From contig JAPDFW010000127.1 of the NCBI GenBank assembly GCA_028826165.1, positions 62,001 to 126,000 on the forward strand: a stretch of 64,000 bases of DNA. Direction: 5' to 3'. This document shows positions 3,415 through 50,354 of this stretch, one piece after another. A program made the position numbers and the translations under genes. The notes below the pieces were generated by a model, which saw only the letters and a list, made by a program, of their open reading frames with translations, was not told the DNA's origin and made no database searches. Position 1 is the first letter of the stretch. Each line of letters starts with the position of its first letter. This stretch comes from Anaeramoeba ignava BMAN (taxonomy: Eukaryota; Protista; Anaeramoebae).

Positions 3415-3715
3415 TTGATTAAATCAACTTGAAATTCAACTAATTTTCATTTATCATAATTTTCTTTTCTTCAAATTCAAAGAAGAATAAAAAAATTTCA
3501 AAATTCAAAAACACAAAATTATTTTCTAAATTTTTGGATTAAATTATTTTTGAATTTTAAAAAAGAATTTATTATTAATATTAAATTAAAATTATTAAAA
3601 ATAATTTGAAGAAAAGTTCGCTTATTTTTCTCTTTATTCATTAAGTTTCAAAGAAAAATGAATAAAGAAAAATTGATGAAAAATGAACTCTTTTTTTTTT
3701 GATTTGAATTAATTT

Positions 3716-3880
3716 TTAAATGAATTTTTTCAGATCTTGACTTAGTAAACTTCTTGGTGTCATTCCTTCAAAACCTAAAACTTCTGACTTAATATCAAAA
3801 TTAGCATCCGTTTGTTTCAATAAAAGGATCATTTCCCATGTAACTGAATGATTATCGCAAAGAAAATGTAATGGAGTTGG
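3716..3880 (-). CDS. Terminal ankyrin exon 5 plus C-cap
   Basis: TAG|[54 protein letters not shown]. Confidence 0.9.
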   Translation of the reverse strand, partial: PTPLHFLCDNHSVTWEMILLLKQTDANFDIKSEVLGFEGMTPRSLLSQDLKKFI

Positions 3881-6800
3881 CTAAAATTTAAATGAAAATT
3901 AAATTTAGATTTTCTTGGAAACAAATTTTTTTTTATTAATTTATTTTTACTCCCTATTCAATAAAATATCCGTTTTTGTTTTTGTTTTGTTTTTTCAAAA
4001 ATTTTTCTTGATTACTTTCTAAAAATAATTCAGTTAAAAAACTTTTCTTTTCTTATAATTTTTTAATTAGATTATTTACTCCCTATTTAAAAATAGATTA
4101 TTCAATAAAAGATGTTTTTTTTCAAAATAAATTTCTTAATAATAATAATAATAATAACAAAAATAGATTTACTCCCTATCAATTATTTTTGATAAATTTC
4201 TTGATTTACAAACAAATTTCAATTTAAAAAACCAAATTTACATCCTAAAAAATTGATGAAAAAATAAAATTTTTATTTTTTCATTAATTTAATATTTACT
4301 GTCTGGAAAAAAATAATTTATTTTTTTGATTAGAAATTTGAAATTCTATTTGGTTTTTTATTATTTACCCACTATTCAATTAAATCCAAAATCAGATCTA
4401 TTATTTTTTCTTTCCAAAAAAGAATAAATGAGAAAAAAATCAAATTACAATCTTTTTAAAAAAATTATTTACTAAATAGTTTTTTTTTGAAAAAGATTGT
4501 ATAAACAATTTACTTTGGGAAGATTAAAATTTGCTTTTTTCTCAACCAGAATTTTAATCATTTCTTTTGTTAATGAACTGTTAGCACATAAAAAATGAAG
4601 AGGAGAAGACTAAAAAAAATATGAGAAATTTTTAATTGAAAAAAAATTTTGATCTATTTTTTAAAAATTTACTTCCTTTTTTTTTATAAATGTAAAAAGA
4701 AAATTTAATTTCAATTTTTTAATTGATGAAATTTACTCTCTATGAATTTAATTTTATAAATTTTTTATTTATTTATAAAAGAGGGATGATTGTTTTTAAA
4801 TGGAAAAAAAATTTACAAGCTATATTTTTTGGGTATTTTTGTTAAATTTCTTCCATTTGAAAAAAAAAAACAAAGAAAAAAAGGGAATTACAATCTAAAT
4901 CAATTCAAATAAATTTGATGTTTGAGAAAAGTTTTGGAGTTTTCAACTCAAATTAATTACTTCCTAAATGATTAATGATTTTAAAAGGAAATTTTTTTTA
5001 AGATCCATTTTGTATGATTTTTTTTTTACATTCTTGATTTGTTTTTCAAAAAAAAATAAAAAAACAGGTTAAATAAAATTCATTATTATTTTTATTTACC
5101 CACTTTTGAGAAATAAATTTTTCATTTTCATGTTCAATTTTATGTTTTTTTTTTCTTTTCAAAAATTAATTACAGCCTTTTTATAGAAGAAAATTTTATT
5201 ATTTAATAAAAAAGAAATGAATATATTTTGGATTTTTTTACATTCTATACAATATTTTTAAATACAATTCTTAAAATGAATTAAATCCTTTTTTTTTTTT
5301 TGAAATCATTTCGTAATTTACTTTCTATTAAAATTCAACAAAATTAGAACATTTTTGAAAATTTTTGAAAGTAAATAAAAATATTTACATATTGGAAACT
5401 AAAATCAGCTTCTGTCTGAACCAGTAATTCAATCATCTCTGTTGTGATTGATCTATTCTGACATAAATCATGCAAAGGAGTCCACTTTTTTTTTTAGAAA
5501 AAAAAATGAATTAAATTTAAAATTAAAAAGTTGCTTTTTGTCTGAAATTTACATCCTTTTATATTTAGATTGTTAAAATATTTATTAGTAAAATATCAAT
5601 GAAATTAAATGGATATTTGAAAAGAAATTTGATTTTTACATACTATTGAGAAAAAAAGAATAATTTATTATTAGATGAATTTATTTTTAAAATTTTTCCA
5701 AGAAATTTAATAAATTTACATCCTTTTGGTAAAAATTTAGTAAAATTACAAAAAATGGAAATTTAACAACATTTATTTTTATTTATTTTTTACTTGCTGT
5801 TTTATAAGAAGAAAATATTATTTTTAGAAAAGAAACAAATCTTTTTTTTTTTTTTTGAAAAATTTTACATTCTAAATTATTTTCAACAAGATCAAAAATT
5901 AAAATCTGGAATTTTAAAAATATTTTCATTTTTACCTTCTAGTAAATTTTTTTTAAGGAAATCATTTATAAAATTAATCCAAAAATAAATATATTTTTTC
6001 TTACAGACTATTTTATTTAGGTTATTTTGAAAATGATATTTTTTTTAATTTGAATTTTAAATTTAAATTAGTTTAAGGAAATGGTTCTTATAATATGTTT
6101 TACACCCTATTCCAAAAATGTATTCAATTTATTTAAATAAAAATAAAATTGAATATGAATTTTTGTTTACAGGCTATTTTTAATTTAAAAAATGAGAAAA
6201 TTATTCTTGATTTATTTTTTTCTTTTTGGAAAAATTACATACTATTTTAAATTTAATAAATTCAAATCATTTTAAAAAAAAGTTGATCATTTTCTTTTTT
6301 GAATATTTACATGCTATTTTTTTTCAAAACACAAAAAGAATAAATAGTAACAAATTAATATAAGATTAAATCAGTTTTTTTTTTTTAAAAAAAATGGAAG
6401 AAGAAAATTTATAATCAAGAAAATATACTCCATCCAAATTAAAATTTGCTTCGTGCTCAATTAATAATTTAATGATTTGAGTCGAAATTGCTCCGTTTCT
6501 GCACAAATAATGAACTGGAGACCACTATTAAAAAATAAAGATGAAAAAATCCATTTTAAAAATTCTTTGTTTTTCTTATATATGAAAAGAAAAAAACTTG
6601 ATCAATTACATCCTAAATATTTTTTTAGTAAATTTTCCTTAATCAAACTAAACTAAGAATTATTATTTTTGACAAATTTTACAAACTGTGGTTTGTTTGT
6701 TTTTTTTTATAAAATTAAGAAAGGAGAACAAATAATCTATTTTATTTTTATTATTTTTATTACAAGCTAAAAATTGTTTTATATTTTTTTTTGATTAATA

Positions 6801-8620
6801 AATTAAAATGATTTTAATAATAAAATCAATAGTTATTTAATTCATACATCTTGTTTGTTTAAATCAACTCCTAGTTGGATAAAGTGATCAAGAATATCCA
6901 TATCAAGAGATCTTTGATTTGCAAAAAAATGAAGTAAGGTTCCTTTCTATTTATGATATTTTTTTGGAACATAAAATCATTCATTTCAAATGAATAAAAT
7001 TTTGAACTTGACTAAAAATACAAGGAAAATCAAAATTTAAAGAAAATACAAACATTCTTTTTCTAAATTTTTTTTGTGAATAAAAATGAATTTTGTTTTT
7101 TTATATTAAAATAAAGGAATATTTAAAGGGATTTTTAGGATTAATTCAATTACTATGTCAGATTTATGGTATTTTTGTGATAATTTTTTTAATTTCTGTT
7201 CCAAACTATCTGGATTATCAACTACATTTGGAGATATTCTTTGATTTGTATTTGGAGATCTTCTTTGATTTGAATTAATAACTAAATCTGAAAATTGATG
7301 AATAATTTTTCTTGGAGATCTTAATTGATTTTGATTTGGAGATATTCTTTGATTTGTATTTGGAGATATTCTTTGATTTGTATTTGGAGATATTCTTTGA
7401 TTTGTATTTGGAGATATTCTTTGATTTGTATTTGGAAATCTTGGTCGATTTGGATTTGGAAATCTTGGTTGATTTTGATTTGGAGATATTCTTTGATTTT
7501 GATTTGGAGATCTTAATTGATTTTGATTTGGAGATGTTCTTTGATTTGTATTTGGAGATGTTCTTTGATTGTCACTCATGGATCTTGTTGGATTTGTACG
7601 AATGGAAAGTTTAGGTTTTATATTGGCTTTCTTCATCTTTTCTAAACATTGAGTAAAATCATTCAATGAGCATCTTTTTTTGGCATCTTGATCCCAACCT
7701 TTCTTGATCATTTCAGCAAGTTCTTGAGGGAAATCATTTGGAATTTGAGGTCTTTCACCTTTTATCATTTTCATTGTGATTATCATAGCACTTAGACCTT
7801 CATAAGGATCTGTCTTTGAAAATATGCAATATAAAATCATTGCTAAACTGAAGATATCACATGAAGTATCATAAACATTTTTTTCAGTGAAAAGTTCAGG
7901 AGCAGAAAATCCAAAAGAAATTGTAACTGAAGTAACTCTCAATGTATGTTGTCTGACTCTTGAAATACCAAAATCAGTGATTTTTGGTTTATTATTAGAA
8001 ACGAGAATATTTTCTGGTTTCAAATCACGATGAATAATTGCATTTGAATGTAAAACTTGAATTCCTTCAATGATTTGCAAAGAATAGTCAATTTGTTGAT
8101 CGAGTGATAAATCTGGGATTTTCTTCTTCAAATCACCTTGTTCGGCATATTCCATAACAATTCCAATCATTTTATCCATTTCTGTTTTACCGTACATCTT
8201 GATAATATTTGGATGATCAAGTTGCATAGCCAATTTAAGCTCATTTTCAAACTGAGCAGCTTCTTTGTCATGACGACCCATTAAAACCCTTTTGATTGCA
8301 ACATCTTTCACTCCCCATTTGGCTTTATAAACTTGAGCAGTTCCTCCACTAGCAAATGGATTGGGTTCGATTTCCATATCTGAAAAAGGAATAAATACTG
8401 CTTCTTCCTGTTTGAATTCCCTTTTGTATTTCTCAACAATTCTCAATAAAGAAACATTCACAATCGGTTGGAAATTATCAAAAGAACTTTGGCAAAAAAT
8501 ACACTCATCTACCGTTTTTAAACATGTTTCACAAATTGAATGTCCTTTTGAACAAACAATCATCGGTTTTCTTTCTTTTGAATAATTCTCAAAACACATT
8601 GGACAAACACCTGGATCCAT
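3716..8620 (-). CDS. RING-TKL kinase-linker-ankyrin repeat protein containing single-codon microexon arrays
   Basis: ATG at 8620 (MDPGVCPMC...). Intact kinase motifs [18 protein letters not shown]. Phase-0 donor after ..KYHKSDI (7154|GTAATT), optional small exon 7062-7054 (KKN), then ankyrin exons 6946-6848, 6524-6429, 5484-5389, 4609-4514, 3880-3716 (stop). All junctions are phase 0. Confidence 0.8.
3951..4451 (-). other. Microexon array D: 8 single-codon exons (I,W,T,D,G,G,K,G)
   Basis: Lowest coordinates: 4449, 4369, 4300, 4242, 4173, 4080, 4016, 3951; all AG|NNN|GTAA. Confidence 0.88.
4514..4609 (-). CDS. Ankyrin exon 4 (96 nt)
   Basis: TAG|[32 protein letters not shown]|GTAAAT. Confidence 0.92.
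4673..5324 (-). other. Microexon array C: 10 single-codon exons (K,N,A,W,N,E,I,L,R,E)
   Basis: Lowest coordinates: 5322, 5242, 5174, 5100, 5030, 4961, 4892, 4817, 4737, 4673; all AG|NNN|GTAA. Confidence 0.88.
5389..5484 (-). CDS. Ankyrin exon 3 (96 nt)
   Basis: AAG|[32 protein letters not shown]|GTAAAT. Confidence 0.92.
5553..6313 (-). other. Microexon array B: 11 single-codon exons (H,Y,P,G,S,K,N,Q,D,Y,D)
   Basis: Lowest coordinate of each 3-nt exon: 6311, 6239, 6171, 6104, 6005, 5936, 5869, 5794, 5720, 5640, 5553; all AG|NNN|GTAA. Confidence 0.88.
6429..6524 (-). CDS. Ankyrin exon 2 (96 nt)
   Basis: TAG|[32 protein letters not shown]|GTATAT. Confidence 0.92.
6610..6766 (-). other. Microexon array A: 3 single-codon exons (L,F,D)
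   Basis: CTT 6764-6766, TTT 6683-6685, GAT 6610-6612; each has a YAG acceptor and a GTAA donor. Confidence 0.85.
6848..6946 (-). CDS. Ankyrin exon 1 (99 nt)
   Basis: TAG|[33 protein letters not shown]|GTATGA. Confidence 0.9.
7225..7570 (-). repeat. 27-bp coding tandem repeat (9-aa unit ~NTNQRISP) in the kinase-ankyrin linker
   Basis: Repeated ttggagatattctttgatttgta units on +; translation [14 protein letters not shown]... Confidence 0.9.
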
Positions 8621-8744
8621 TTTAAAATTAATAAAAAAAAAAAATGAAAAAAAAGGAAAATTAAAATCAAGCAAAAATAAAAAAATGGAAAAATATTTTT
8701 TTTTTCATTTTTCTCTTTTATTTTTTATTTTAAAAAAAAAAAAA

Positions 8745-11065: not shown

Positions 11066-14000
11066 ATGTCTTTATATAAGAAAATTGGTTTTGGTGTTAC
11101 AGCTGCAGCTATTGTTGGAGCAGCAATTTATGGAGGTTACAAAGTGAGTCAGCATTATGGATATTTTCAAAAGAAACAAACGATTAAACAAAAGATTGGA
11201 TTTATTGGAAGGTGATTTTAATTAATAATTTATAAAATTATTATTAAATTATTTATTATTAAATTATTAAATTAATTATTAAATTAATTATTAAATTATT
11301 AAATTATTTATTAAATTAATTATTAAATTATTAATTAAATTATTTATTAAATTAATTATTAAATTAATTATTAAATTTATTATTAAATTAATTATTAAAT
11401 TAATTATTAAATTAATTATTAAATTATTTATTAAATTAATTATTAAATTAATTATTAAATTAATTATTAAATTATTTATTAAATTATTTATTAAATTATT
11501 TATTAAATTTATTATTAAATTATTTATTAAATTTATTATTAAATTAATTATTAAATTATTTAATTATTTTATTAAATTAATTATTAAATTAATTATTAAA
11601 TTAATTATTAAATTAATTATTAAATTATTTATTAAATTAATTATTAAATTAATTATTAAAATTAATTATTAAATTAATTATTAAATTATTTATTAAATTA
11701 TTTATTATTAAATTATTTATTAAATTATTAAATTATTTATTATTAAATTATTTTATTAAATTTTAATTTTTTATTATTTAAATTAAAATTATTTTATTAA
11801 ATTATTTATTAAATTATTTATTAAATTATTATTAAATTATTTATTAAATTATTTATTAAATTATTAAATTATTTATTATAAATTAATTATTAAATTATTT
11901 ATTAAATTATTTATTAAATTAATTATTAAATTAATTATTAAATAAATTATTTATTAAATTAATTTATTAAATTAATTAAATTAATTATTAAATTATTTAT
12001 AAAATTATTTATTAAATTATTTATTAAATTATTTATTAAATTATTTATTAAATTTAATTATTATATTATTTATTAAATTATTTATTAAATTAATTATTAA
12101 ATTATTTATTAAATTATTAAATTAATTATTAAATTAATTATTAAATTATTTATTAAATTAATTATTAAATTAATTATTAAATTAATTATTAATAAATTAT
12201 TTATTAAATTAATTATTATTTAAATTATTTATTAAATTATTTATTAAATTATTTATTAAAATTATTTATTAAATTATTTATTAAATTATTTATTAAATTA
12301 ATTATTAAATTATTTATTAAATTATTTATTAAATTAATTATTAAATTAATTAAAAAATTATTTATTAAATTATTTATTAAATTAATTATTAAATTTATTA
12401 AATTATTTATTAAATTATTTATTAAATTATTTTATTAAATTATTATTAAATTATTAATTATTTATTAAATTATTTATTAAATTATTTATTAAATTAATTA
12501 TTAAATTAATTATTAAATTAATTATTAAATTAATTATTAAATTATTTATTAAATTAATTATTAAATTAATTATTAAATTAATTATTAATAAATTATTTTA
12601 TTAAATTAATTATTAAATTATTTATTAAATTAATTATTAAATTATTTATTAAATTAATTATTAAATTAATTATTAAATTAATTATTTAAATTATTTATTA
12701 AATTAATTATTAAAATTAATTAAATTATTAAATTAATTATTAAAATTATTAAATTATTTATTATTAAAAAATTAAAAAATTATTTATTAAATTATTTATT
12801 AAAATTATTAAATTATTTATTAAATTATTAAATTATTAAATTATTTATTAAAATTTAATTATTAAAATTAATTAATTATTAATTATTAAATTAATTATTA
12901 AATTATTAAAATTAAATTAAATAAATTATTTATTAAATTATTTATTAAATTAATTATTAAATTAATTATTAAATTAATTATTAAATTATTTATTAAATTA
13001 ATTATTAAATTAATTATTAAATTATTTATTAAATTAATTATTAAATTAATTATTAAATTAATTATTAAATTAATTATTAAATTAATTATTAAATTAATTA
13101 TTAAATTAATTATTAAATTAATTATTAAATTAATTATTAAATTAATTATTAAATTAATTATTAAATTAATTATTAAATTAATTATTAAATTAATTATTAA
13201 ATTATTAAATTATTAAATTAATTATTAAATAAATTATTAAATTATTTATTATTAAATTATTAAATTATTAATTATTAAATTATTGAATTAAATATTAAAT
13301 TATAGTGGAATGATGGCAGAAGCAATTGCTCGTGGAATACTTGAAAAAGAACTTGTTAAACCAGATCAAGTTATGGGATCTGACCCAATTCCTGAAAGAA
13401 GAGAAGTTTTTAAAAAATATGGTTTTCATGCAACTGAAAACAATGAAGAAGTTGTTGAATTTGCAGATATCATTATTCTTGCAACAAAACCACAAGTTGC
13501 AGAAGAAATGCTTAAACATTTGAAAAACAAAAATTTAGCTGAAGAAAAAGTAAATAAAAATAGGAAAATATAGGAAAATATAAGAAAACATGAAAACAAG
13601 AAAAATAATTTCAAATATTTATTTTATATTTTAAATACTTTCCAAAAACATGAAAACAACAAAAATATTTTATATTCATTTTATATTTATTTTATATTTT
13701 AAATATTTTATAAATACATTTTAAATTCATTTTAAATATTCATTTTATATTTATTTTAAATTCATTTTAAATTCATTTTATATTTATTTTATATTTATTT
13801 TATATTTATTTTAAATTCATTATAAATTTATTTTAAATTCATTTTATATTCATTTTATATTTATTTTAAATATTTTAAATATTCATTTTAAATATTTTAT
13901 ATTCATTTTAAATATTTTAAATTTATTTTAAATTTATTTTAAATATTTTAAATATTTTAAATATTTTATAAATTTATTAGATCGTAGTTACAATTATGGC

Positions 14001-36652: not shown

Positions 36653-39600
36653 ATGAGTTCTAAAAAAGTAAAATTATTAATTTGGTTAATAATTAATGAA
36701 AAATTTATAAAAAACTTGGAAAATATTCAAGTTTTTATAAATTCTAAACATAAGACAGAATTTAAACAAAAAAGTAAAACAGATTCAATTTGGTTTTGTG
36801 AAACTGAAATTGAAATGGAAAAAGAAAATAAAGAAAATAAAGAAAATAAAGAAATAAAAGTAAAGAAAGTAAAGAAAGTAAAGAAAGTAAAGAAAATGAA
36901 GATCAACCCTTTCAAAAAAACATCAAATTTATAATAAAAGCTCAAAAAAATGATCTTAAAGAAAAAATTCAATCTGCAAATTATAAAATTATTGAAACTA
37001 ATCCTCATCAAACAATCTTTTATTTTTTCCAATTTACTAATGATGAAAAAAAAACCGAAATGTTGAATACCTCATCTATTTTGAAATTCCTTAATATAAT
37101 TCTTTTCTCAAAAAAAACAAAAATCCTCAAAGAAGATATTTCTAAAAAATGGGAAATTGTTTCTGCTTTATTCCAAATCAAAAAACCCCAAAAAGTAGAG
37201 TTTTATGATTGGATCAAAAAATTAAAAATTACTCAAAATACTCAAATATTCTTATTGATATCTTTAATCTCAAAAAGATTCAATCTTAAAGTTGCCCAAA
37301 ACTTGTTATTCGGTTCAAATAAACCAGAAAATAAATTCCAAGATTTAACTGAACTCACTTTTGAATTCTTTTCTCAAGAAAATCAAGAAATAGAATCACT
37401 CAAAACCAGTTTCAAAACAACAATTTCTAATATTTGTAGAAAATCAAAAAAAGTGGATTATGTCAAATTAGTTCCTTTTTATTTAATGCTTAAAAAAATG
37501 CAAATCAATCATAATTTCCAAGTTTGCTTGAAATCTCAAGAATTAGCACCAAATTTTATCATTTTGTTAAATGTCACTTTCCTCAATAAATCTTTCTTGG
37601 ATTTTTTTAACATTTCACTATTCACATCAATTTTTGGAACAGATTTTCATTCAACAAAAGCTTACGAACAATTTCTTCTTAAACTTGTTTCACATTTTGA
37701 AATAATCAAAAATATAGAACTTTATTTATCTGTTGATAATTTCCTCAAGCTTTTTGATAAACTAAAGTTCAATGATATGAATAATTTTTTTAGTTTTTGG
37801 AGTCCTTTTTATATCCATGTGAAAAAAATCATAGAACAAAATAAAAAAAAAGTAGATAAAAGAATGACAAAAACTTTCAAACAAATATTAAAAGGTTCTA
37901 GATCTACTAGCAACACTATTTCTTCAGAAAAGAAAATAGAACTTCTTCAAATTGAAGAAATTATTATGAAGAATTTCTCTGATCAAAAATTTCAATCAGA
38001 TCAGGATATTCTTATATTGGTTAATTTTGCAAATCCCGATATTATTTCTCATATTAGCAAATTCTCCACAAATCTTTTTAATTATTTTTCTTCAGAAATT
38101 ACCAAACTTTACAAAAAAGTTGATAAAGATTCCATTCTAGATAATGACAAAATAATAAAACATATCCCTTTCGTTCAAATTCAATGCAAAGAATGGCAAG
38201 ATTTTTCAGGAATAGATCCTCAAAATATAAATTATCAAAGCTCTTTCTCTTCATTAATTCCTGAATTTAAAACATCAGGAAAAATTCCAAAATTATCTCA
38301 ATCATTCCTTTGGTTTAAAAAATCTCAAAAATTAATCAAAGATTGGTCAACAAAAAAAATCCCGTTTTTAAAATTACTCAACGAATATAAGGAAAATCTC
38401 TTGAAATTTGCTGGGAATTTGTCTTCTTGTTCGTGCACATTTCAGGATTTCTCAATCTTTTCTCAATATAAAACCGATTATCAAAATCTTTTCAAATCTT
38501 TATTAATAAAAGATTTGAATTTCGAAAAGGCAGAATCAATTTACAATCAAATACAATCCAAATCAAAATGTTTATCTGATTTCGCTGATTTTTATTTACC
38601 AGAAACAAACGAAATGTGCCAAAAAATTCATAATGAATTCATATCTAAAGCTAAAACTATTGAAACAGAGCAAAAAAAACTAAGTGATTTCGATCCCTCT
38701 TTTTCTGATTTCGAGATTGATTTCGATCTTTTGAAATGGATGAATACTCTCCAAACATCATCAATCTTCTGGAATTTGTGGAATTCCCAACTCCAAAAAA
38801 CTTCACAAGAAAAACCTATCAAAATCGAACAACTCAAAACTAAAATTATTAAAAACACAAAATCTGAATGGGATCAAATCCATAAATCTATTACTGATCA
38901 ATCTATTAAAATCTCCAAATTGGATTTACTTTTTTCTGAAAACATTAATGATAAGACCTGGATTCAAAAGGAGATTAAATTCCTCAATCCAAAATATAAA
39001 AATGAAAAATCCATAATAAAAAAATCCAAAAATGAAAAATCCAAAAATGAGAAATATCTTGAAGAATACCTGAAAGTAAAAGAAATTCAACTTTTTCTGC
39101 TATCTTTCTTTAAATTTTGTGAAAAATATTCCTTCGAAAATAACCAAAACAATTATCAAGATTTATTCTCAAATTGGGATAATTGGACTCTTAGCGATAC
39201 AACATTAATATTATCAAATTTAAATCAGGAGTTCGGTTCTGTTGAAAGTTCTATTATCACTTTTTTCCAGAATTTAATTGAAATCAAATATCAAGAAAAC
39301 ACTTCAAAAACAGAATATTTATATAATACTGATTTACTTGATTTTCTCTTGCAAAAAAAATACCAAAATGACGAACTCTTTTTTTCAGAAATTGATCCAG
39401 ATAGGATGGAAGATGGAATATACAAGGAAGCTGTGCAGCAATTAATCAATTTAAGAAAAAGAATGAAAGCATACTTGTATTCTAATAATACATACAAATC
39501 AAAAAAGTATCTCTTGCAAATCATTTCCCATGAAGAAGCAAGATTCAAATCTTCCTCTCATCAAACTTCATTTTCCTTAATTCGTAATTCCCTTCCTGGT

Positions 39601-42600
39601 ATTAAAGAATGGATTCAATCACAAAAAGAATCATTCCAAACAAAAGCAAAAAGAAATATTACCAAAATATTTTCTGAAGGATCTACATTTCTATTTCAGT
39701 CTTCTATTACCGAAAACAAAACATTTATTTGTGAAACTTCCCAATCTGAGAAATTTACATTTGATGATTTCACAGATTTTTATTCTTTTTTCCATGATTT
39801 CGACTTTAATCAAAATTCAATTCAACCCCAAAATATCAAAAAAAACAAAAGCAAAAAAAACAAAGACAACAACCAAAATATAAAAAAAAATAAAGAAAAT
39901 AAAGAAAATGACAAAGAACAAATAGAGGATTTTCTTGATTCGTTTAAATACATTGAAAAATGTACGGAACTTCTTTCTAAACTTACTTCAAACTCTCATT
40001 TCAAATACAAAAATTACTCTCATAAAATTCCAGTCAATAAATCCAAAAAATATAAACAAGATTTGAATAATTTCCAAATTAAATTAGAACAAGATTTGAC
40101 AGAATGGAAAAAAACAGTAAATGAAATTTTTGTAGGATTTCCTTTTCTTTCTTTCTTTTCTCAAGAACAAATTTTGGGATTTTTACACATGATTCAATCT
40201 TTTTTTGATAAACAACAAAACTCTTCAAATTTGCTCAACTCAAACGAAAAAGAAGATTTCATCCAAATATTAAAACTTTATTCAAAATCACTCACAGTTG
40301 AAATTATTGAAACAGAAATCAAAAAAACACAAAATACAAATTCTGAATTCAAAGAATATGCCAAAATCTTAAACGATATTTTGCAAAAACATTTCGATCC
40401 AAACAGAACAATCAAAATTGAAGATGATAATCTATTTGAGAACCACATTTACAAAGAGGCAAACAAGGAATTAAACAAACAATTCAACAAGAAAAGCGGC
40501 AAAGTTACAGATCCAAAAATTTTCGTTCATTCTTCAAAAAATGAATTGAATGTTTATGATATTGTTTGCACTTTCTATTATATATTTTCTCGCAAATTCC
40601 CATTAAGGGAACAAGTACTAATTTGCAACGAAGAAACAACAGAAGGAGATATTTCCCAATTCTTGAAAGTTTACGAATTTTACAACTTAGATAGAAACAT
40701 ACAAACAAATCAAAACACACACTCTTCTCTATTCTCCATTGTTCATGCAAACAGACTCTCAAAAAAGAAAGCAAATTTCCTCATTTCAAGTATCCATTCT
40801 ATATCCTTTGATACCCAATTCCCATTGGTCATTTTTTGCTCAGGTAGTGACTATCTAACTAAAAACTTACTTTATGCATTTTCTACAGGAGAAGTTAAAA
40901 ACACAGATATAGAACCAATCCACAACAATGAACTCAAAAAGTTTATGAAAATAAACCCATTTTCACAAAGAATGAAAGTTTTCACATCAAAACTTGCTGG
41001 ATTTGGCAAAACATTCCGCATTCGCCAAGTTTGTTACAAAGAAAATCCTTCATCAAACTATCACCACATTGTTGTTACATCAGAAAAAAAATCTGAAATT
41101 ATCAAACAGATTATTGATAAATTGGCCAATCATGAAAAAAAAGATATAATTTATTTTCATATTGAATTTCCTTATTCACCAAAAAGTACAATTTCTGATT
41201 ATATTTGGACTCTTCTAATGTGGGGATCAATAGAAGACAAAAGATCTTTCTCATCCATAAATTCTGCATGGAATATACCAGAAAATGTTAGATTGATGTT
41301 TGAAGTTCCAAGTCATAGAACTGAAGATTCTTTGCAGGGACTTAAATTCTTTCCTCCTCTTAAATACTTGGAACAAAATGAATGTGAAGTCAACTCAAAA
41401 TCCTTTTCTTTTAATTCCTATTCTCCAACAAATAATGGCATAATCGTAAAAACAAAGGATTGGGATCTGATTTATGTTCGAAATTTATTTAAATTTTATG
41501 ACCAAGAATTTGAGATACTAAGAGGCAAAAACAAAGAAGCTCGTATTACAATTTTCAAAGATATATCAGATCTCAAATCCAAAGAACAAAAAGAAGCAGC
41601 CAAAAAAACATTCTACAAAAAGAGCAAAAAATTTATTTACGAAGTAAATAAAGATGAAGAACTAACTTTTCGATTACTTGCAAACTTTTGGAGAGTCTTG
41701 AAATCTCACATTCATGCTTTGATGTCTTATAATTTTCTTAATCCAAATATGGGGAAAGAGTTGTTCAATAACGAATCAATGGGAAAACTATTCCTAAAGC
41801 AATTCATAAAAGCCTATTTCTCTTCCGTTTCAAAAATGATTGCTCGCTCATTTGATTGGACAAATACATCTCCAGAATCTGGATTGACAGAACTAGAAGA
41901 TTTATGTAATACGTTCGATAAGGCTCTTCCTTGGGAAAAAAGAGATCTTTTTATTATTCTTTTTGTAATTTCAATAACCAAAACAAACGATCAGAAAACA
42001 TCTGTAAACTTAAGTGGAATTAATCTTCTGGGAAGAGATGAAAACGAAATGAGAAATTGCTTCGATACCAAGTTACATAAAACATTAGAAAAAAATGGTT
42101 TTGTTTTCCACAAATCTCTTCCTCCAGATTCAATTATTAATGAGTACGAGAAAGCTTTTTCAGCTCTCAATTCATTATCCTTCAAAAAATTTGATTTCAA
42201 AAAATTATCCAAAGAACATCAAGAAAACAAATCAAAATATACATTCACAACAGATAACTTCTTGAAGATGATATTTATACAATACAAATTATTTGCAAGA
42301 CTGCCTGTGATTTTGCTTGGAGAAACTGGATGTGGAAAAACTTCCTTAATTTCATATTTGTGTGAAACTGTGATGAACCAAAAACTAAAACTTCTTACTA
42401 TTCATGGCAAAATCAAGAGAAAAGAAATCTTTAATTTTGTAGAAAATGCCCAAAAAGAAGCTGAACAAATAGGTGAAAAGATTGCAATTTTCTTTGATGA
42501 ATTCAATACAGCTCCCAAAAAATGTCTTATGATTTTAAAAGGTTTGTTTTCTGATCGTATTCTCAATGGAATTCCCATTTCTGACCAAATTTACATTTTT

Positions 42601-45600
42601 GGAGCTGCTAATCCTTATCGTTTGAGAGAAGAGAAAAGTGAAAATGATGATTTCTTAACAGATGAAGGATTGGCGTTCGATTACGGAGAAAGACAAGAGG
42701 AAATGAAACTTTTAAGAAGAGCCGTATATCGTGTTCATGCAATTCCAGATTCGTTTTTCGATGATATTTTTGATTACGGAATACTATCACAAAACTCTGA
42801 GCAAAGATACATTGAGAAAATGATCCAAAACTCCTTTTCTGAAATTGATGCTAAAAAAAATCAAATTGTTACAAACAGAGAAGCAACATTCATTTTGCTT
42901 TCTCGAGTCCTATTCGAATGTCATAATTTTCTTCGAGAAAACTCAAACGACGAACGCAGCGCTGTTTCTTTGAGAGACACATCAAAAGCGCTCAGAATTT
43001 TCAAATGGTTACTAACAGAAAAAATTGGAAATTTAATAATCGATTCAAAAAACCCCAAGGAAAAACTCGTAAATGCTTTTATCGTTTCATTATTTGTTTG
43101 CTTTGGATGCAGATTTAATACTGGAGTAAGGATTGATTTCTACAAAATGATTGAAAAGAAAATATCAACAAATGACAGTAAATTTTCTGAAGGTAAAATT
43201 ATTTCAGATGTGATCGCAAAGTCACAGGATAATCTTATAAAAGAATTAAATATAAATTTCAAAAAATGGACTGTTGCTTTAAATCAATCACTAAGAGAAA
43301 ATTTATTTTTGATCTTCTTTTGTTCATACACACAAATCCCATTGTTCTTGGTCGGTAAACCTGGCTCATCAAAATCAATTTCAATAGAGATTTTAATGCA
43401 AGAATTAGGACCACCAAAATCTACAAAAAAATTTTTAGAAAAATGGAATCTTCCTTCTTTAAAACCGTTTTATATTCAGTGCTCACCAATTACAACAGCT
43501 TTGGGAATCACTAAAATATTTGAGCAAGCTAGAAGTTATGCATCACATTTGGATCCAGAAAATGCTCTCAGTGTTGTTATTTTGGATGAAATTGCACTAG
43601 CTGAGTTGAGTCCAGATCTTCCATTAAAAGTTCTTCATTTTGAACTTGAAAAGGTTGATAAAAAAATAATGAACCAAGAAAATTTAATAAGCCAAAAAAA
43701 CGAACCTTTAGTTTCTGTTCTAGCTGTTTCAAATTGGCAATTGGATCCAAGTCAAACAAATCGAGGAATATTATTAAGAAGAGTTGATCCAAATTCATCT
43801 GAACTTTTTTCAACAGCTCTCCAAATTCTCCGCTCTTTTGATAAACGTTTCCCAAAAAATTTTGCAGAGAAAATTTCTAGTGTTTATGAATTGATTTTCA
43901 GAACTCAGATGAGTGAATTCCAAATGTCAAACATGAAACAGAGCCAATCCCAAATACAAAACAACGATCCAAGAAATTATTTTGGATTGAGAGATTTTTA
44001 CTATTTTATCAAGATGATCGGCTTTAATTTCGCAAATAACAAAATCAAATATGATGATCCTTATATGATTTGGAATGTTATTTACCGCAACTTTGGATCA
44101 AAACCAGATTTTATTGGGAATCTCAGACCAGAAATTATGAAAATTTTCAACTTTAGTAGTATGCCTAAACCTCCTTCAGCTTTATCACTTATGCAACAGA
44201 ACTTATCATTATCTATTGTTGATCAAAAGCGATTTCCTGATGCTAAACTTCCCCAAAGTATTTTAAATCATCCACAAAAGTTTTCTCGACATCTAATGAT
44301 ATTGCCAGACAGGGCATCAATTCTTCCGTTAATTCTTTCTCAAATAAAACGGAAATATATTGTTATTTTTGGTTCTTCTTTTGCTGAAGATAAAAAAGCA
44401 CTTAGAATCATCCAAAATCTCAAAAAAGTTGAAAAGGCTGTTACTGAAGGCAAAACCATTGTTTTATGCTATAATGAACAACTTTATGAGCCTCTATATG
44501 ATTTATTGAATCAGAATTATATTCAAGAAGATGATAGATTGTTTGCTCGTATTTCATTTGGGCATATTACCCAAAACATTTCCATTAATCAAAACTTCAG
44601 GATTATTACTATAATTGATAAAACTCGAGCATATGAAACACAATCTCCTGCCATTTTGAACAGATTTGAAAAGCAGCTTGTTTTACCTGAAGATTTCATC
44701 GTGCAAAAAGAATTTATCTCATTTCTAACTGAGCAAACTACTAACCTCAGCAATATAAAAAAATATACAAAATTCAGAATCAGTAATAAGAATTTGATCA
44801 TCAATTATCACGAAGATCTTTTGTCATCACTTGCAGTAAAATTAAAAGATGATAATGGAGTTGAAGAGAAGATCAGAAAAAAATATAAAAAAAGCAAAAA
44901 TATCGAAAAGAAAGTAATTGAGGAGAAAAAGAAATATGGTGAGAAGTGTTGGATTAGACTTTGTAAAACAGAGAAGATGATCCAGCTTTTTGATATCATT
45001 TCAAATGAGAAATTAGAAGAATCAGAGAAAACATTTCTTCAAAATATCTGGAATACTTTCGAAAGTCAATATTGCTACAACTTTTCAGAACTTTTTAAAA
45101 AAGAAATATCAAAATACAAAATCAAGAACTGCGCCATTTTAACTTATTCATCATACACAAACCAGAAAATTGATATACCAAAAGAATATAAATTGGAAGA
45201 GATTGATCTCTCAAATTATACAAGTGATACTGAATTGAAAAGAGATTTAGAAGATAATTGGTACAACCAAATTAATAATAGCAAATTTATTTTGGGAGTT
45301 CATCTGAATCTTGCTGAAAAAGAATCATTAGAACTGTTTTATCAAACAAAATATCTGATCGAAAGTATGATTGAAAGGAATTCCTCCAAAATAGACAACC
45401 AACATAGTATTGATGAATCTGAGAACAGAAGTTATTTATTGAAAACACATAATTGTTATATTGTTTTTTCCTCCATTTACCACCAAAACAAACAAGTAAT
45501 TCATTTTACTATTGTTTTGAAAACGATTGGGAGTTTTATTACCTGGATGAATTGGAACAAAAATACAATTTTGATTTGATTAAATTGAAAAAGGAAAACT

Positions 45601-48600
45601 GGGATCTTAAGGATATTCTTAACAACTTCCAAAACAATTTCAAAGAATTTATTACACAAATTTTTCCAGTTTCAATATCTCAATTTTCAGATCCTTTGAA
45701 CCCAAATTATTCTCAAGAATTTCAAGAATTGGATAAATTGTTGAACACTAATGACCAACTTCAAAAAATTATTTTTAACAACATTTTAAATATGATCACT
45801 GAAGGAAATGAAAAAGGTTTGGAGTTATATAAATGGGACATAACAACTATTATATCGAGTTATAATCAAAATGTCTCAGTTTCAGAGTATGTATTTAATA
45901 TCTTCATAGAAAAAATTACACGAATTTTCGCAATATTACTTAACAATTTGAACCGAAACGAAAATTCTAGACTAATTAAAGAAAATGAGATTATCAGAGA
46001 TATTTGGTTTTCGATTGTGAGTGAATATCAAATTCCTTTTTATGATATTTTCATTCTAAATCAGTTCAAAAAAGCAGAATTCCCATTTTCATTTTTAATA
46101 TATTCATTAATTGAAGATTTTGGATCAGTTCCCAAAGAAAAGAAATATCTAAGGAATATTATCAACATTCCATTCAGTAAAATTAAAACTTTTAAAAGCA
46201 GTAATAATGATAATGAAAATATTGATAAAAAGATTATCAAAGATATTGTTATTCGATATTTCCATGATTTTCTGAAGATTTCACTAGGAAATCAAATTGA
46301 AAAAATTCAAGAAGTTCAAAATCATTTAATTAATGCAATTGAAGGATTTAATAACCAAAAAATTATTGACATTTCATTGAAAAGAATTCACTCAACATTT
46401 TCTGAAAAAGTTAAACCTCATTTGCAAGATATACTTTTACTTCATAAATATTACAGCTTATTAATAACACAAGATGAATCATCGCAAAGAAAAATTCCAA
46501 AATCTAAAAAAAAGCATTTCTCTATCTTTTCACTTCTTCAAAATTATTTTAAAGCTTTAGAAAACACATATAAAAAAGGAAATCTAGAAAATAAGAAATA
46601 TTTGTGTGGAATCATTTCCGAATCAATCCCATTTGTTCAAAATTTGATGATATCACTTACAAATCAATCAAAAAAAGCAAATGAAATCAGCTCTTTAAGT
46701 GATCACTGGAGTAGAGTTTTGATACTAAGAAATGTTTTTATTTGTTTCCTTGTTCCTTTTGGGAAAGAGTTATCAATTTCTTCACAAACAACAAGCCTCC
46801 TATTTTTGGAAAATAATGAAAATAATGAAAATAATGAAAATACAAATATTGTTGATCATTTTTTTAATGATATTTGGGGTGAAATTGAAAAAAAGTTTGT
46901 TTCTTTCAAGAAAGATTCAGTTCTAAAATATATTGAAATGATTGGAGAAAATCCGAAAAAAAATAAATTGAAAAACATTTGCTTTTGCGAAAATAATAAC
47001 CATCCAATATTAACAAATGAAATTAAACAAAAGAAGCCTTATATCTGTTCTTGTTGTCAAAAAGAATATAAAAGTAAATCAAAACATTACGAAAAAGCAA
47101 CTGCAGAAAAAATAAGTAATTATAAACAAAAATTGGCCAAGTTTGCGAATTATTCCTCATTTTTCTTGGAGAACTTTGGCAAAATTTTATTCCAACAAAT
47201 CTTGATTAAATTTTATTTGAAGGAAAAATTAGATCAAATTAAAGGAAATTTTGTTAAATATATAGATAATTTACTTAAAGATACTTCCAGAGTTACACCT
47301 TCACTATTTAATTCTTTAATTAGAGATTTTGTGTTTCCACCAATAGAAGATCCGGAACTAAGGGATTTGCTTATGGATATTCTTAATATTTTTTTAAACA
47401 AAGTTGATTTATCAGAACAAAATATTAATAACATATTTGGAGCTTCATGCTTACAAATATTGATAAACCAAGATTCAAATGAAGAAATTGATCAAATAGA
47501 ACAAATCATGGATACTATCAACATTAATGAACTTCTTCCAGAAAAGAAATACACTCTAAGAAAAATTTATAGAATCGCTAATTTTAGGAAACTTCTTATT
47601 GAAAATACAAAGAATTTTGTGAAAAAAAATCAAGAATTTTTTCAGAAAAAAGAAGGAAAAAAATGGATTATGTTTTTATTCAGGTTCATATATCATGAAA
47701 AAGGTAGTGCAGAATTAACTCGATTTGCTGCAGAAAATCTTCATTTTCTCCGAAAGAATATTAAAGAGGTTGGGGATATCATTAGTATAGACACTAATGC
47801 TTTTAATTGTGAAGTTATCATCCCAAATTTGAAAAATGAAGAAACTTTAGTTAAACATTTCCAAAACAAAATTATGGGGATTCCCAACAAAAAAGAGTAC
47901 AAATCAAAAGTTTCTTGTTTACAATTTGCTTTTGATTTTAGTGATACGATTCAAAACACAATTAAAGATGTTGGAATAATAAGATTGCTTTTCCATACAT
48001 TAGAAATTGTTAATAGTATTAATTTTGAGCCATTAGTAAAATTAGTTTCAATAGAAATTACAAGAAATTCTAATGAACCAACAGCCAAAAAAATGATAGA
48101 TAAATTAAGCAGTATTTATTGGCCTAGCATGCCTGAACATCCTTATTTGCAAAGCTTCCACAAACAAAAAAAGCATTGGTGGATTTGTCCCAATAAGCAT
48201 CCCTTTTATATTGATGGATGCGGGAAACCAACAGTGATTAACAATTGTCAGACCTGCGGCGCAAGAATTGGAGGGATTAAACACAAACCTATTGAAGGAA
48301 CAGTACGAGCTACTATTGAAAATTTCCCAGAATATTTGGGTTACTCACATTCAATTTTTCCAATCGATGAATCATTAAATGTTCGAATATTATCTCCAAT
48401 ATCATATTTAATACTTAAAATTATGACAATTTCTTGTGTTCTTTCTTTAGCAACCATAAATGATTCATTTGCGGATAATTTTTCTTTGATAATCAATCCA
48501 GAATTAGAAAAACCTGAAAATAAAACTCAAATTATTGGTAATTTCTTGAAAATTATTAATAAATCAATTTCAATAATGAAGAATATTCTCAAAATATCAA

Positions 48601-50354
48601 TTGAAGATACCTTTAAATATTATCACAAAGTCTTGAATTTACTAGCAAAAGATGAATACTCAAAGCATCTTAGATATGAAATTGATGATCTTCAGACGAT
48701 AGAAAATCGAAATCAAATTGAAGAGCATTTTAATCAAATAATTGTCAAAGAACATGAAAATATTATTACTCAAATAAAAAACGAAAAATCAAATGAAAAA
48801 GAGAAAAAAAGCGCGCTGAAGAATTTAGAAAAAGAAGAAGTACTTTGGCCCTATTTATATTACAAAACACAAACTTATGATGAATTTCTTGGGTTGTTTC
48901 ATCGAGATCAAGCAAATTCCAGAAATTTTCCAATAATTCATTTTGTGAATGAAAATCGAGAGAATTTAGAAATACTCAGATTATTCCCACAATTTATTCG
49001 ATTCACATCACTTATCATGCAAAGGTTTAATGGAATATTGTCATCTAACGATATTCAAGATATGAAAATATCTCATTTTATTGAAAAAGAAAAAGAAAAA
49101 GGAAATATAAGTAATTCAATTGAGAATTTATATCAAGATTTTGAGAATTTTTGGAACTTAACTTGGAAATATGTGAAACAATTGTTAGTCTGTCATGAAA
49201 CACCTGAATATCTTCAAAAAATTGTAATGAATAAAGATCAAAGTATTGGGTTATGTTTAACTGGAGATGAAGATGTGTATCTTTGTGTACCAAATTTAAT
49301 AAATCATGTAATTGATTTACATAATAATTTGATAAGACAAGAATCTATTCAAGAAAATATCAAACAACAAATTTTGTCAAATCAAAAGAAAAAGAAAAAC
49401 AATAAAAATAACAATAATAATAATAACGAAAATGATAATAATGAAATTATTGAAGATGAAGATGAAGATGAAGATGAAGATAAATTTGATATTCTTCATT
49501 TCCCAACTCAAAACTATTTTGATTGGTCGAAATTAATAAGTATTGATATCAATGAAATCATAAATTTTATTAATGATCATCAAATTGATCAAATTTCTTA
49601 TGAAATTTTGGAACAATATCTAATTGAAAAATTCAATTTCTCAACTAAGTCAAAAAAGATTGTATCTCAAATTGAATTTTTCTCATTTAAAGATAAAATT
49701 GATAAAAAAGTTTATGCTTTACAAAATCTGAACTGGAGACAAGAAAAAATACCAATTGAAAAATGGGATCGAATTGTTGGAGAATTAACTGTTTCAAAAT
49801 CGATAGAGCAATGCAAAAATTTAACCAAAACAGTAATTTTTTCTTGCTCAAATATTCCACTAGATTCTGTTCATTTAAACAACATTCCAGATTTAAATTT
49901 AATTGAATTTGCAGCTGAAAAACTTAAATTAAAAAAAAATGATGATTTAATTGCGACTAAAGAAGGCTCAAAAATTTTTACAAAAGAGATTCAATTGAAA
50001 CATTTACTTGATTTATATAAAAAATTTGAAGAACATTTTACTGATTTAAGAGAAAAAATTTCAGATAAATTTAAAGAGCAAATCAATCAAAATCAAAAAG
50101 AAGATTTGGATAAAATTCAAGATCATTTTGATATTGAAACTCTTTTAATAATTTGGAAAAGATCACTTTTAAAATTAAATGAAAAAACTTCAGCTTCTTA
50201 TCTTTTTAAAGAATACATGAGTTATATTCCATATGAAAATGATCAAGAAGAGCAATGCATAGATTTACTTCATAAACATTTCCCTAAATCCATTTCCTGT
50301 TCTCATTCATTATCTGCTTTTGATTATGTTTCCAATTTTAAGAAGATAAAATGA
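36653..50354 (+). CDS. RNF213-like: RNF213/mysterin-like giant AAA+ ATPase with RZ-finger E3 module (~4570 aa once two 1-nt homopolymer gaps are repaired)
   Basis: SKLAGFGKT, LLGETGCGKT..FFDEFN, VGKPGSSKS..VILDEI, GLRDFYYFIK, LYDLLNQNY, LNRFEK; RZ finger CPNKHPFYIDGCGKPTVINNCQTCGARIGGIKH. Confidence 0.88.

Follow-up and report, generated by a model that had tools for sequence, protein, structure and literature searches.

What do arrays of three-nucleotide units, each bounded by splice-site motifs, contribute to the ankyrin gene that contains them? The window analyzed here is a 64-kb stretch of the genome of Anaeramoeba ignava, an anaerobic amoeba and free-living protist, and it carried on the minus strand one RING-kinase-ankyrin gene with five C-terminal ankyrin (ANK) repeats. 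In the public annotation, this gene encodes P0001 (672 aa); all 32 units are skipped, and the large exons are joined directly. The original prediction took the units for optional one-codon exons of a splice-combinatorial, variable receptor. The reading favored here, to which we give a probability of about 0.58, is that of a single gene whose ANK cores are 96–99-nt exons and whose loops are 3-nt exons that are always included.

Structure of the gene and its arrays

The kinase exon (1470 nt) had a translation 100% identical to the annotated P0001. It matched the Pfam models Pkinase (1.2e-49) and PK_Tyr_Ser-Thr (7.5e-44), and the RING models scored under the curated cut-offs. Its 3′ end read KSDI, followed by a GTAATT donor. 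The precomputed Pfam matches of P0001 (PF00023, PF12796, PF13606, and PF13637) placed it among the ankyrin proteins; its ANK exons read xTPLHxLC...GANFN, and the relatives retrieved were ANK proteins, none of them a transcript-derived protein of this family. The coordinates of the five one-repeat ankyrin exons (99, 96, 96, and 96 nt, and the terminal exon) were re-derived (Table 1). The terminal exon comprised the last ANK repeat and a partial capping repeat; the long loop of the latter is uninterrupted by introns. By-eye inspection of the N-terminus, a RING finger, revealed no hydrophobic leader or signal-like stretch, which makes the product look cytosolic and speaks against a surface receptor.

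A motif count by spacing found 32 AG-NNN-GTAA units on the minus strand at 3951–6766 (motif sites between 3955 and 6768), with 22 TAG, 3 CAG, and 7 AAG acceptors, identical to the earlier count. The plus strand of the array region contained none, and the other spacings there (0–2 and 4–9 nt) gave 0–1 sites each. The rest of the window held 5 such sites on the minus and 12 on the plus strand. At that rate, 3.2 kb should contain less than one site, and the density in the array region lies above background. The arrays translated, as before, into LFD, HYPGSKNQDYD, KNAWNEILRE, and IWTDGGKG, with 17 different amino acids and no stop. All 32 units were microexons in the sense of AG/GT-bounded, in-frame exons of ≤30 nt, and the flanking 96-nt exons were in phase 0. 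Together they represented 96 of the ~2112 nt of coding region.

The introns within the arrays were 55–96 nt long and those adjoining large exons 62–115 nt, with a median spacer length of 71 nt and ~90% A+T. Published A. ignava introns have a modal length of 76 nt and a GC content of 8.1% (PMC11550330 supplement). The spacers thus matched ordinary introns by the length standard of the species, as originally stated. The annotated introns, which skip all units, would span 323–944 nt.

Table 1. Exons and one-codon arrays of the RING-kinase-ankyrin gene (positions within the window).
Feature	Position	Strand	Description
Exon 1	7154..8623	-	RING finger, intact Ser/Thr (TKL-like) kinase domain, SPN/NQR low-complexity linker
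ANK exon A	6848..6946	-	99 nt, 33 aa, KGTLLHFF...VDLNKQD; TAG acceptor before, GTATGA donor after
Array 1, L-F-D	6610..6766	-	three 3-nt microexons: CTT 6764-6766, TTT 6683-6685, GAT 6610-6612
ANK exon B	6429..6524	-	96 nt, WSPVHYLC...NFNLDG
Array 2, H-Y-P-G-S-K-N-Q-D-Y-D	5553..6313	-	eleven 3-nt microexons: 6311-13, 6239-41, 6171-73, 6104-06, 6005-07, 5936-38, 5869-71, 5794-96, 5720-22, 5640-42, 5553-55
ANK exon C	5389..5484	-	96 nt, WTPLHDLC...ADFSFQY; AAG acceptor
Array 3, K-N-A-W-N-E-I-L-R-E	4673..5324	-	ten 3-nt microexons: 5322-24, 5242-44, 5174-76, 5100-02, 5030-32, 4961-63, 4892-94, 4817-19, 4737-39, 4673-75
ANK exon D	4514..4609	-	96 nt, SSPLHFLC...NFNLPK
Array 4, I-W-T-D-G-G-K-G	3951..4451	-	eight 3-nt microexons: 4449-51, 4369-71, 4300-02, 4242-44, 4173-75, 4080-82, 4016-18, 3951-53
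Terminal exon	3716..3880	-	last ANK repeat and partial capping repeat; stop TAA 3716-3718

Coding character and splice sites of the units

The original prediction had proposed a genome scan with spacing controls and a search for paralogues, and both extended the pattern beyond the window. The triple-unit motif with 3-nt spacing gave 297 matches at many loci; the 2-nt control gave 21, all within one 27-nt satellite, and the 4-nt control 7, all in simple repeats. Homologous arrays were found at other A. ignava loci. On the gene strands of 17 loci, 386 sites had a spacing of 3 nt, 13 of 6 nt, and 9 of 9 nt, and spacings that were not multiples of three occurred 1–9 times each, except for 2 nt (20).

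No stop codon was present among 274 triplets at 14 ankyrin loci, against 24.6 expected (P ~7e-12). The GC content of the triplets was 27%, compared with 12% in the adjacent introns, and they were rich in K, D, N, E, and G, a composition typical of hairpin loops. By these sequence measures, the triplets are coding.

The splice sites were conserved as well. AG and GTAA were retained in 32 of 32 units, although the introns of the window had diverged to background similarity (mean pairwise identity 0.62 vs. 0.64 when shuffled) and contained no near-identical copies, which points to selection on the splice sites. TAG made up 72% of the microexon acceptors, whereas AAG made up 57% of those of 49 large ANK exons; the donors were alike (GTAAAT or GTAAAA). 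In strength, the splice sites of the microexons therefore seem to equal or exceed those of the constitutive 96-nt exons.

These data bear on the annotated model, which places the arrays in long introns that are normally removed whole. The AG-NNN-GTAA motifs would then be remnants of duplicated intron ends, decoys, or way-stations of recursive splicing and would add nothing to the protein. Direct joining of 96-nt exons is indeed seen in P0001 and in five further A. ignava models, and among the contiguous relatives there are some with short repeats of 32 residues, so that a product lacking all units is structurally not impossible. At locus L002, moreover, intron-plus-triplet units can amplify in a minisatellite-like manner. 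However, neither the lack of stops, the exon-like GC content, and the loop-like amino acids nor the preservation of every splice-site pair would be expected of skipped sequence, and a recursive step would leave the NNN in the mRNA, which amounts to inclusion. Exons of 3 nt are also beyond gene predictors, and several models read into introns (P0156 and P0280), so the annotation is not evidence on this point. Together with the loop homology described below, this makes regular skipping very unlikely.

Probable inclusion of short and long arrays

The units fell exactly at the tip of the β-hairpin between repeats, positions +4 to +6 past the ...GADVN motif, where they had been placed originally. 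Repeats were 35 residues long in intronless relatives, namely the A. ignava paralogue L020, P0158 of A. flamelloides (an intronless gene, L018), and P0126 of Phytophthora, with 7 residues between ...N and TPLH. In the window gene, a 32-residue exon plus three microexons likewise gave 35, and other ANK subfamilies had 32 plus two; uniform 32-residue spacing was found only in the annotated models of A. ignava. Array 1 and its flanking exons gave 7 residues from N to SPVH, as in a canonical hairpin. The residues of three-unit arrays were, in order, K/R, D/N, and G/E/K, which is the ANK hairpin consensus KDG. Because of this position-by-position match and the 32 + 3 = 35 arithmetic, the short arrays (2–3 units) are, on sequence homology, almost certainly constitutive.

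The long arrays (8–13 units) were conserved at both ends among paralogues ~50% identical. In loop 2, a terminal aromatic residue plus D was common to paralogous arrays (HFD, FYD, YYD, and RYD), and the length varied from 7 to 13 units. In loop 3, the first residue was K in most of the homologous arrays fetched (KIKGDAYFRG, KDKDSYNRTE, and KLKNELEL). Loop 4 had 8 units in five of the seven homologous arrays examined (six loci), with I or V first and mostly G last (IDEQGQPG, IDEEGQPG, IEYDGDKY, and VDSEWIRG), and the last G of array 4 with PTPLH of the next exon formed the ANK motif G-x-TPLH. Contiguous metagenomic relatives (P0167 and P0178) had natural long loops with an aromatic end before TPLY. 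The retained end residues and the length of loop 4 favor fixed inclusion of the long arrays as well. The differing array lengths of paralogues at homologous loops, such as loop 2, count against it.

The splice-combinatorial explanation holds instead that every 3-nt exon is optional and that ordered subsets (e.g., three per loop) are spliced in, by regulation or at random, to give a natural DARPin-like library. Frame-preserving coding triplets, the part of the original prediction that stood, are in its favor: all units are multiples of three and stop-free, so any subset stays in frame. The units also occupy hairpin-tip positions that are known to contact targets in designed ankyrins, and a canonical hairpin needs just three residues. 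In the recent paralogues L003 and L004, the ANK exons had 34 non-synonymous and 8 synonymous codon changes and evolved faster than the introns, which fits diversifying pressure. The microexon codons of this pair (6.5% divergence) were no more conserved than the introns (7.8%), so the pair carries no signal of purifying selection. Against optional inclusion, or a choice of three, stand the short arrays, which are required in full, and the conserved ends and loop 4 length of the long ones. Splice sites no weaker than those of constitutive exons and short introns of modal length point the same way, since under intron definition a donor should be joined to the acceptor closest to it, and a protein that looks cytosolic is a poor candidate for a receptor library. 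We therefore regard general optional splicing as unlikely, even if some skipping of three-nucleotide exons may well occur. Likewise unlikely is combinatorial use of the long arrays (8–13 one-codon exons) across cells or conditions, by which one gene would yield many ordered subsets of loop residues in the hairpins of a large RING-kinase/BTB-ankyrin family. The isoform totals given earlier (1.1 million, or 2^32) are speculation, since nothing indicates optional or choose-three inclusion.

Sequence evidence thus suggests that the residues of the one-codon exons are always present in the protein and are not left to the chances of splicing. In this constitutive reading, the helical core of each repeat would be one 96–99-nt exon, and each inter-repeat β-hairpin loop would be built from consecutive 3-nt exons in phase 0, every one of them followed by a short intron (GTAA...YAG/AAG). 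Under intron definition, the spliceosome would presumably remove every short intron; the mRNA would then take up all 32 codons, those of the long arrays included, and encode ~704 residues. The predicted hairpin inserts of 3, 11, 10, and 8 residues are absent from the public 672-aa model.

Origin of the arrays and comparison with known microexons

Two explanations were considered for how the arrays arose. The first, probable one is that they lengthen and shorten as codon-plus-intron units are duplicated or lost, and that they spread through the ankyrin family as a cassette of a 96-nt exon and a microexon was duplicated. Such gain and loss would ease changes in loop length and sequence between paralogues over evolutionary time. 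Unit duplication is not visible in the window gene, whose introns are mutually unrelated; near-identical introns do exist elsewhere in the genome (mean identity 0.84 at L001 and 0.83 at L013).

The other is an introner-like origin, in which mobile intron copies were inserted between the codons of a contiguous loop; it concerns origin only and fits constitutive splicing. The three microexon positions equal the ancestral ANK consensus, which suggests that introns entered an existing KDG. At L001, the near-identical introns are flanked by codons shared no more than by chance (9–12% vs. 8.7% expected), and this also holds for intron pairs with ≥95% identity. However, this origin leaves the exclusive 3-nt spacing and the phase without a reason, the window introns show no mutual similarity, and most triplets of L002 differ by a single base from one of a few related codons, which is the pattern that duplication plus drift would produce. 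It appears improbable.

The restriction to multiples of three deserves separate mention. It would not be needed if all microexons were always spliced in, and to that extent it speaks against full inclusion; it is expected if skipping must stay in frame, and unit duplication would account for it just as well.

If the units are always included, unbroken runs of up to 13 one-codon exons, with 32 such exons in the window gene and hundreds genome-wide, would be an extreme eukaryotic gene structure. The spliceosome would repeatedly be faced with 3′ and 5′ splice sites three bases apart, and the question would arise how introns come to occupy every codon boundary of a loop. Many public A. ignava ankyrin proteins would lack their hairpin loops, likely the binding residues, and codon-plus-intron gain and loss would be a simple way to lengthen or shorten a loop in steps of one residue. 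If varying subsets are used, the arrays would be a new way to generate protein diversity, at single-amino-acid resolution and in target-binding hairpins. We found no description of such one-codon exon arrays in the literature; several known systems share some of their features.

DARPin libraries randomise two of the three hairpin-tip positions. The microexon residues likewise lie at the hairpin tip (D-x-x-G-x-TPLH). DARPin diversity, however, is made in vitro at a fixed loop length, whereas here the variation is between germline paralogues and includes loop length. A Dscam-type cluster of mutually exclusive exons does not describe the arrays, since the units are single unrelated codons and short arrays are needed whole.

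Recursive splice sites (AG/GTAAGT, with exons of zero length) also put a 3′ site beside a 5′ site inside an apparent long intron, and the segments of the arrays could plausibly be removed in such steps. No sequence of a recursive site is retained in the mRNA, whereas the triplets carry coding signatures, and zero spacing occurred once in the array region compared with 32 sites at 3-nt spacing.

Plant microexons (1–15 nt) show conservation, are in many cases constitutive, and suffer from pervasive misannotation (PMC8831610), which parallels the A. ignava models that skip all units. They differ in that they occur singly or in small clusters, have lengths other than 3 nt, do not follow a one-codon-per-exon arrangement, and are not confined to a single repeat family. 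Vertebrate neural microexons have a lower limit of 3 nt, preserve the reading frame, and in most cases change the surface loops of interaction domains (PMC7935315), all of which recalls the units described here. However, these exons (3–27 nt, SRRM4-dependent) are single cassettes with long introns and tissue-specific factors, and they do not form arrays of up to 13 one-codon exons.

Schistosome micro-exon genes (MEGs), in which exons down to 3 bp have been reported (bioRxiv 10.1101/2023.06.21.545858), are similar in their runs of symmetric multiple-of-3 exons, any of which can be dropped without a frameshift, and in being hard to annotate. MEG exons are 3–81 bp long with introns of up to 5 kb, whereas the window units are almost all exactly 3 nt with introns of 55–96 nt. 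The coding region of the window gene is not made up mostly of microexons, and its product begins with a RING finger in place of the signal peptide of a secreted protein, as judged by eye. MEG products are small secreted proteins of a metazoan parasite, for which alternative exon use is documented; the arrays described here, known from genomic sequence, fill only the ankyrin hairpin loops of an apparently cytosolic RING-kinase in a protist.

Structure and annotation of the ankyrin gene

The gene under study encodes a RING finger, a protein kinase domain and ankyrin repeats on the minus strand, and its annotated product, P0001, is a protein of 672 aa. The window DNA has a GC content of ~20% and contains long ORFs in the standard code. 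A protein search pointed to Anaeramoeba ignava, on which ground a ciliate or dictyostelid origin was rejected. Between the larger ankyrin exons, the minus strand of region 3955-6768 contained 32 AG-NNN-GTAA sites, compared with 0 on the plus strand of the same region. Spacings of 0-2 and 4-9 nt gave 0-1 sites each in the array region, and the remainder of the 64-kb window held 5 sites on the minus strand and 12 on the plus strand. The acceptors of these units were TAG (22), CAG (3) and AAG (7). The four arrays read LFD, HYPGSKNQDYD, KNAWNEILRE and IWTDGGKG, as translations of the single microexons only. The motif count and a minus-strand reading of 3500-7200 reproduced all the units, acceptor counts and array peptides of the original prediction.

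Larger exons of the P0001 gene: feature, position in the window, strand and remark
First exon of P0001 gene	7154-8623	-	RING finger and intact protein kinase domain
Larger exon 1 of five	6848-6946	-	phase 0
Larger exon 2 of five	6429-6524	-	phase 0
Larger exon 3 of five	5389-5484	-	phase 0
Larger exon 4 of five	4514-4609	-	phase 0
Larger exon 5 of five	3716-3880	-	phase 0

The spacers had a median length of 71 nt and are ordinary introns; introns of A. ignava have a published modal length of 76 nt and 8.1% GC (PMC11550330). In the window gene, the mutual similarity of the within-array introns was 0.62, versus 0.64 for shuffled sequence. Both AG and GTAA were kept in 32/32 units though the introns had diverged, which indicated that selection maintains the splice sites. 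These sites are not weak: the microexon acceptors were TAG in 72% of cases, the large ankyrin exons had AAG in 57% (n = 49), and the donors were alike. A satellite artefact was ruled out because the window introns were unrelated to each other, and recursive splice sites were ruled out because the spacing was 3 rather than 0.

The genome scan proposed in the original prediction, for AG-NNN-GTAA runs against 2-nt and 4-nt controls, favored the 3-nt spacing. The three-unit pattern gave 297 genome-wide matches at many loci, versus 21 at 2-nt spacing and 7, in simple repeats, at 4-nt spacing. All 2-nt matches came from a single 27-nt satellite (TAGAAGTAAATAAAATAGTTTTAAATT-like) at G000:C123:146885-148081. 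In 17 fetched loci, counted on the strand of the gene, AG-N(k)-GTAA[AT] occurred 386 times at k = 3, 13 times at k = 6 and 9 times at k = 9; values of k that are not multiples of 3 gave 1-9 occurrences, except k = 2 with 20. Among the array triplets of 14 ankyrin loci, no stop codon was found (0/274), whereas 24.6 were expected from intron trinucleotide frequencies (P ~7e-12). The GC content of these triplets was 27% versus 12% in the neighbouring introns, and they encoded mainly K, D, N, E and G. We consider the one-codon exons to be real, coding and unannotated, with a probability of about 0.9.

In the annotated P0001, each ankyrin exon is joined straight to the next, and 32/32 triplets are left out. 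Five further A. ignava ankyrin models also omit the triplets, and some read through into introns, as in P0280 (...HIQYVNFLNQQKK). The repeat spacing was a uniform 32 residues in every ankyrin model examined (P0001, P0151, P0156, P0186, P0268, and P0280), which indicated that hairpin residues are missing; this probably represents a systematic annotation gap in the public A. ignava proteome. The six models would agree with arrays that are simply skipped, but exons of 3 nt are beyond the reach of gene predictors, and the models therefore carry no weight against the microexons. Skipping as annotated is improbable. Two word-index protein searches and one exhaustive search with the ankyrin part of P0001 found no transcript-derived family member; their matches were confined to A. 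ignava models from genome annotation, each lacking the triplets, and foreign ankyrin proteins. The sole EukProt transcript ORF seen, P0014, was a kinase paralogue without ankyrin repeats. In the sequencing-run search, a single run matched the locus, sharing 0.34 of the words.

Use of short and long arrays

Intronless relatives provided a yardstick for repeat length: L020 (a paralogue in A. ignava whose open frame spans 1309 aa), P0158 of A. flamelloides (gene L018) and Phytophthora relatives (P0126). Their repeats comprise 35-36 residues, with seven residues between ...GA(D/N)xN and TPLH. In the microexon genes, 32 residues come from the exon and three from the array; in other ankyrin subfamilies the exon contributes 32 and the array two, again with seven residues ahead of TPLH. 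The uniform 32-residue spacing was seen only in annotated A. ignava models. The three-unit positions read [K/R]-[D/N]-[G/E/K] and match the KDG consensus of ankyrin hairpins. Judged by this fit in repeat length and consensus, every unit of the short arrays is almost certainly used, in order, and A. ignava would thus be able to splice consecutive 3-nt exons routinely.

The long arrays were compared among paralogues whose ankyrin exons were ~50% identical and whose introns could not be aligned. Loop 2 ended in an aromatic residue followed by D (DYD, HFD, FYD, YYD, and RYD), and loop 3 started with K in most arrays fetched. Loop 4 began with I or V and usually ended with G, which forms G-x-TPLH with the following exon. 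It consisted of eight units in 5/7 homologous arrays (the window gene, L003, L004, L019, and L022), with seven in L010 and ten in L011. Contiguous metagenomic relatives had natural long loops with aromatic residues at the end, ahead of the TPLY motif, and the last loop of the window gene has 11 residues encoded without introns. The conserved end residues, the loop 4 length and the contiguous long loops argued for a fixed loop peptide rather than a codon pool.

The original prediction had considered a choice of three codons per loop. That proposal was not supported, as the long arrays carry the marks of a fixed peptide and the short ones are almost certainly needed in full. The length of every single microexon is divisible by 3, which fits tolerance of skipping and is not required by constant inclusion; the same rule also fits duplication of [codon + intron] units. 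The end residues are mostly kept across paralogues and so is the loop 4 length in most arrays, and combinatorial use of the one-codon exons appears unlikely. Inclusion that is predominantly constitutive would be the likelier mode, a view we hold with moderate confidence.

Origin of the units and divergence of the family

Unit amplification was visible elsewhere in the genome, at loci L002, L013 and L001, which represent array types outside ankyrin genes and where the introns were near-identical. Cassette duplication was seen between the paralogues L003 and L004, whose array lengths are identical but of which L004 has one additional [96-nt exon + 3 microexon] cassette. The window arrays are too old to reveal either process. 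Locus L001 (G000:C1:407500-415500, minus strand) contained at least 32 one-codon units uninterrupted by large exons, introns of ~73 nt with a mean pair identity of 0.84, diverse triplets (R, N, Y, Q, D, L, P, and others), and GC or dead AT donors in some units. Among its intron pairs with ≥95% identity, the flanking codon was shared in 9-12%, versus 8.7% by chance. Near-identical introns there flank unrelated codons, so simple unit duplication is no explanation.

Kilobase-scale, minisatellite-like arrays of intron-plus-triplet units were found at L002 (G000:C1:1056000-1065999, with pattern matches on to ~1073000) and L005 (G000:C1:941000-944000), with mostly ATT, ATG, ATA, ATC, CTT and TTG triplets. 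The L002 array comes after an exon ending in ...LGPSFG that looks TLDc-like by eye; its donor may leave phase 1, and the triplets may then read in another frame. A few 6-nt and 9-nt microexons (GATGAT, GATGATGAT, GGAGGA, and GAACGA) occurred in the arrays of L012 (G000:C67:403500-408000), L007 and L011; precise loss of an intron between identical or adjacent codons would produce such units.

The recent paralogues L003 (G000:C61:331000-337000) and L004 (G000:C128:50000-59999) diverged by 6.5% in microexon codons, 7.8% in introns and 10.6% in ankyrin exons; the microexon value is near that of the introns, in a pair too recent for power. Their ankyrin exons showed 34 non-synonymous versus 8 synonymous codon changes. 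With ankyrin exons differing more than introns, germline diversification of the family seems rapid, which would fit a role in recognising variable partners. Such diversity would lie between paralogues, as distinct from diversity by splicing. The P0001 protein is probably cytosolic, given a RING finger at its start and no leader sequence.

L020 (G000:C2:646500-650700) and many other matches in this genome are ankyrin genes of this family that lack introns; their open frames span 400-3300 aa and their repeats 35 residues. Thus, two architectures coexist here for one repeat family. The A. flamelloides locus L018 (GCA_027625915.1, JANTQA010000036.1) encodes P0158, an ankyrin-BTB homologue of 1327 aa, in an intronless gene. 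At least in this gene, the two species do not share the architecture of one-codon exons.

Elsewhere in the window, there were two tandem 316-aa ORFs at 164-2430 (164-1114 and 1480-2430), a stretch of 2 kb with just 5.9% GC at 12001-14000, and two very long plus-strand ORFs of 2839 aa and 1633 aa at 37060-50354, which overlap at 45453-45579.

Comparison with known microexon systems

In the literature, no report was found of microexons in Anaeramoeba, and arrays of single-codon exons were not found described for any organism. Vertebrate neural microexons (PMC7935315) and constitutive plant microexons (PMC8831610) resemble the A. ignava arrays in size class and in the annotation problem. Among known systems, the schistosome micro-exon genes come closest; they have symmetric exons of 3-81 bp, long introns, secreted products and documented differential splicing (bioRxiv 10.1101/2023.06.21.545858). 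The A. ignava arrays differ from all three systems in that exons of a single codon follow one another, separated by minimal introns, and occur solely in the loops of a repeat domain.
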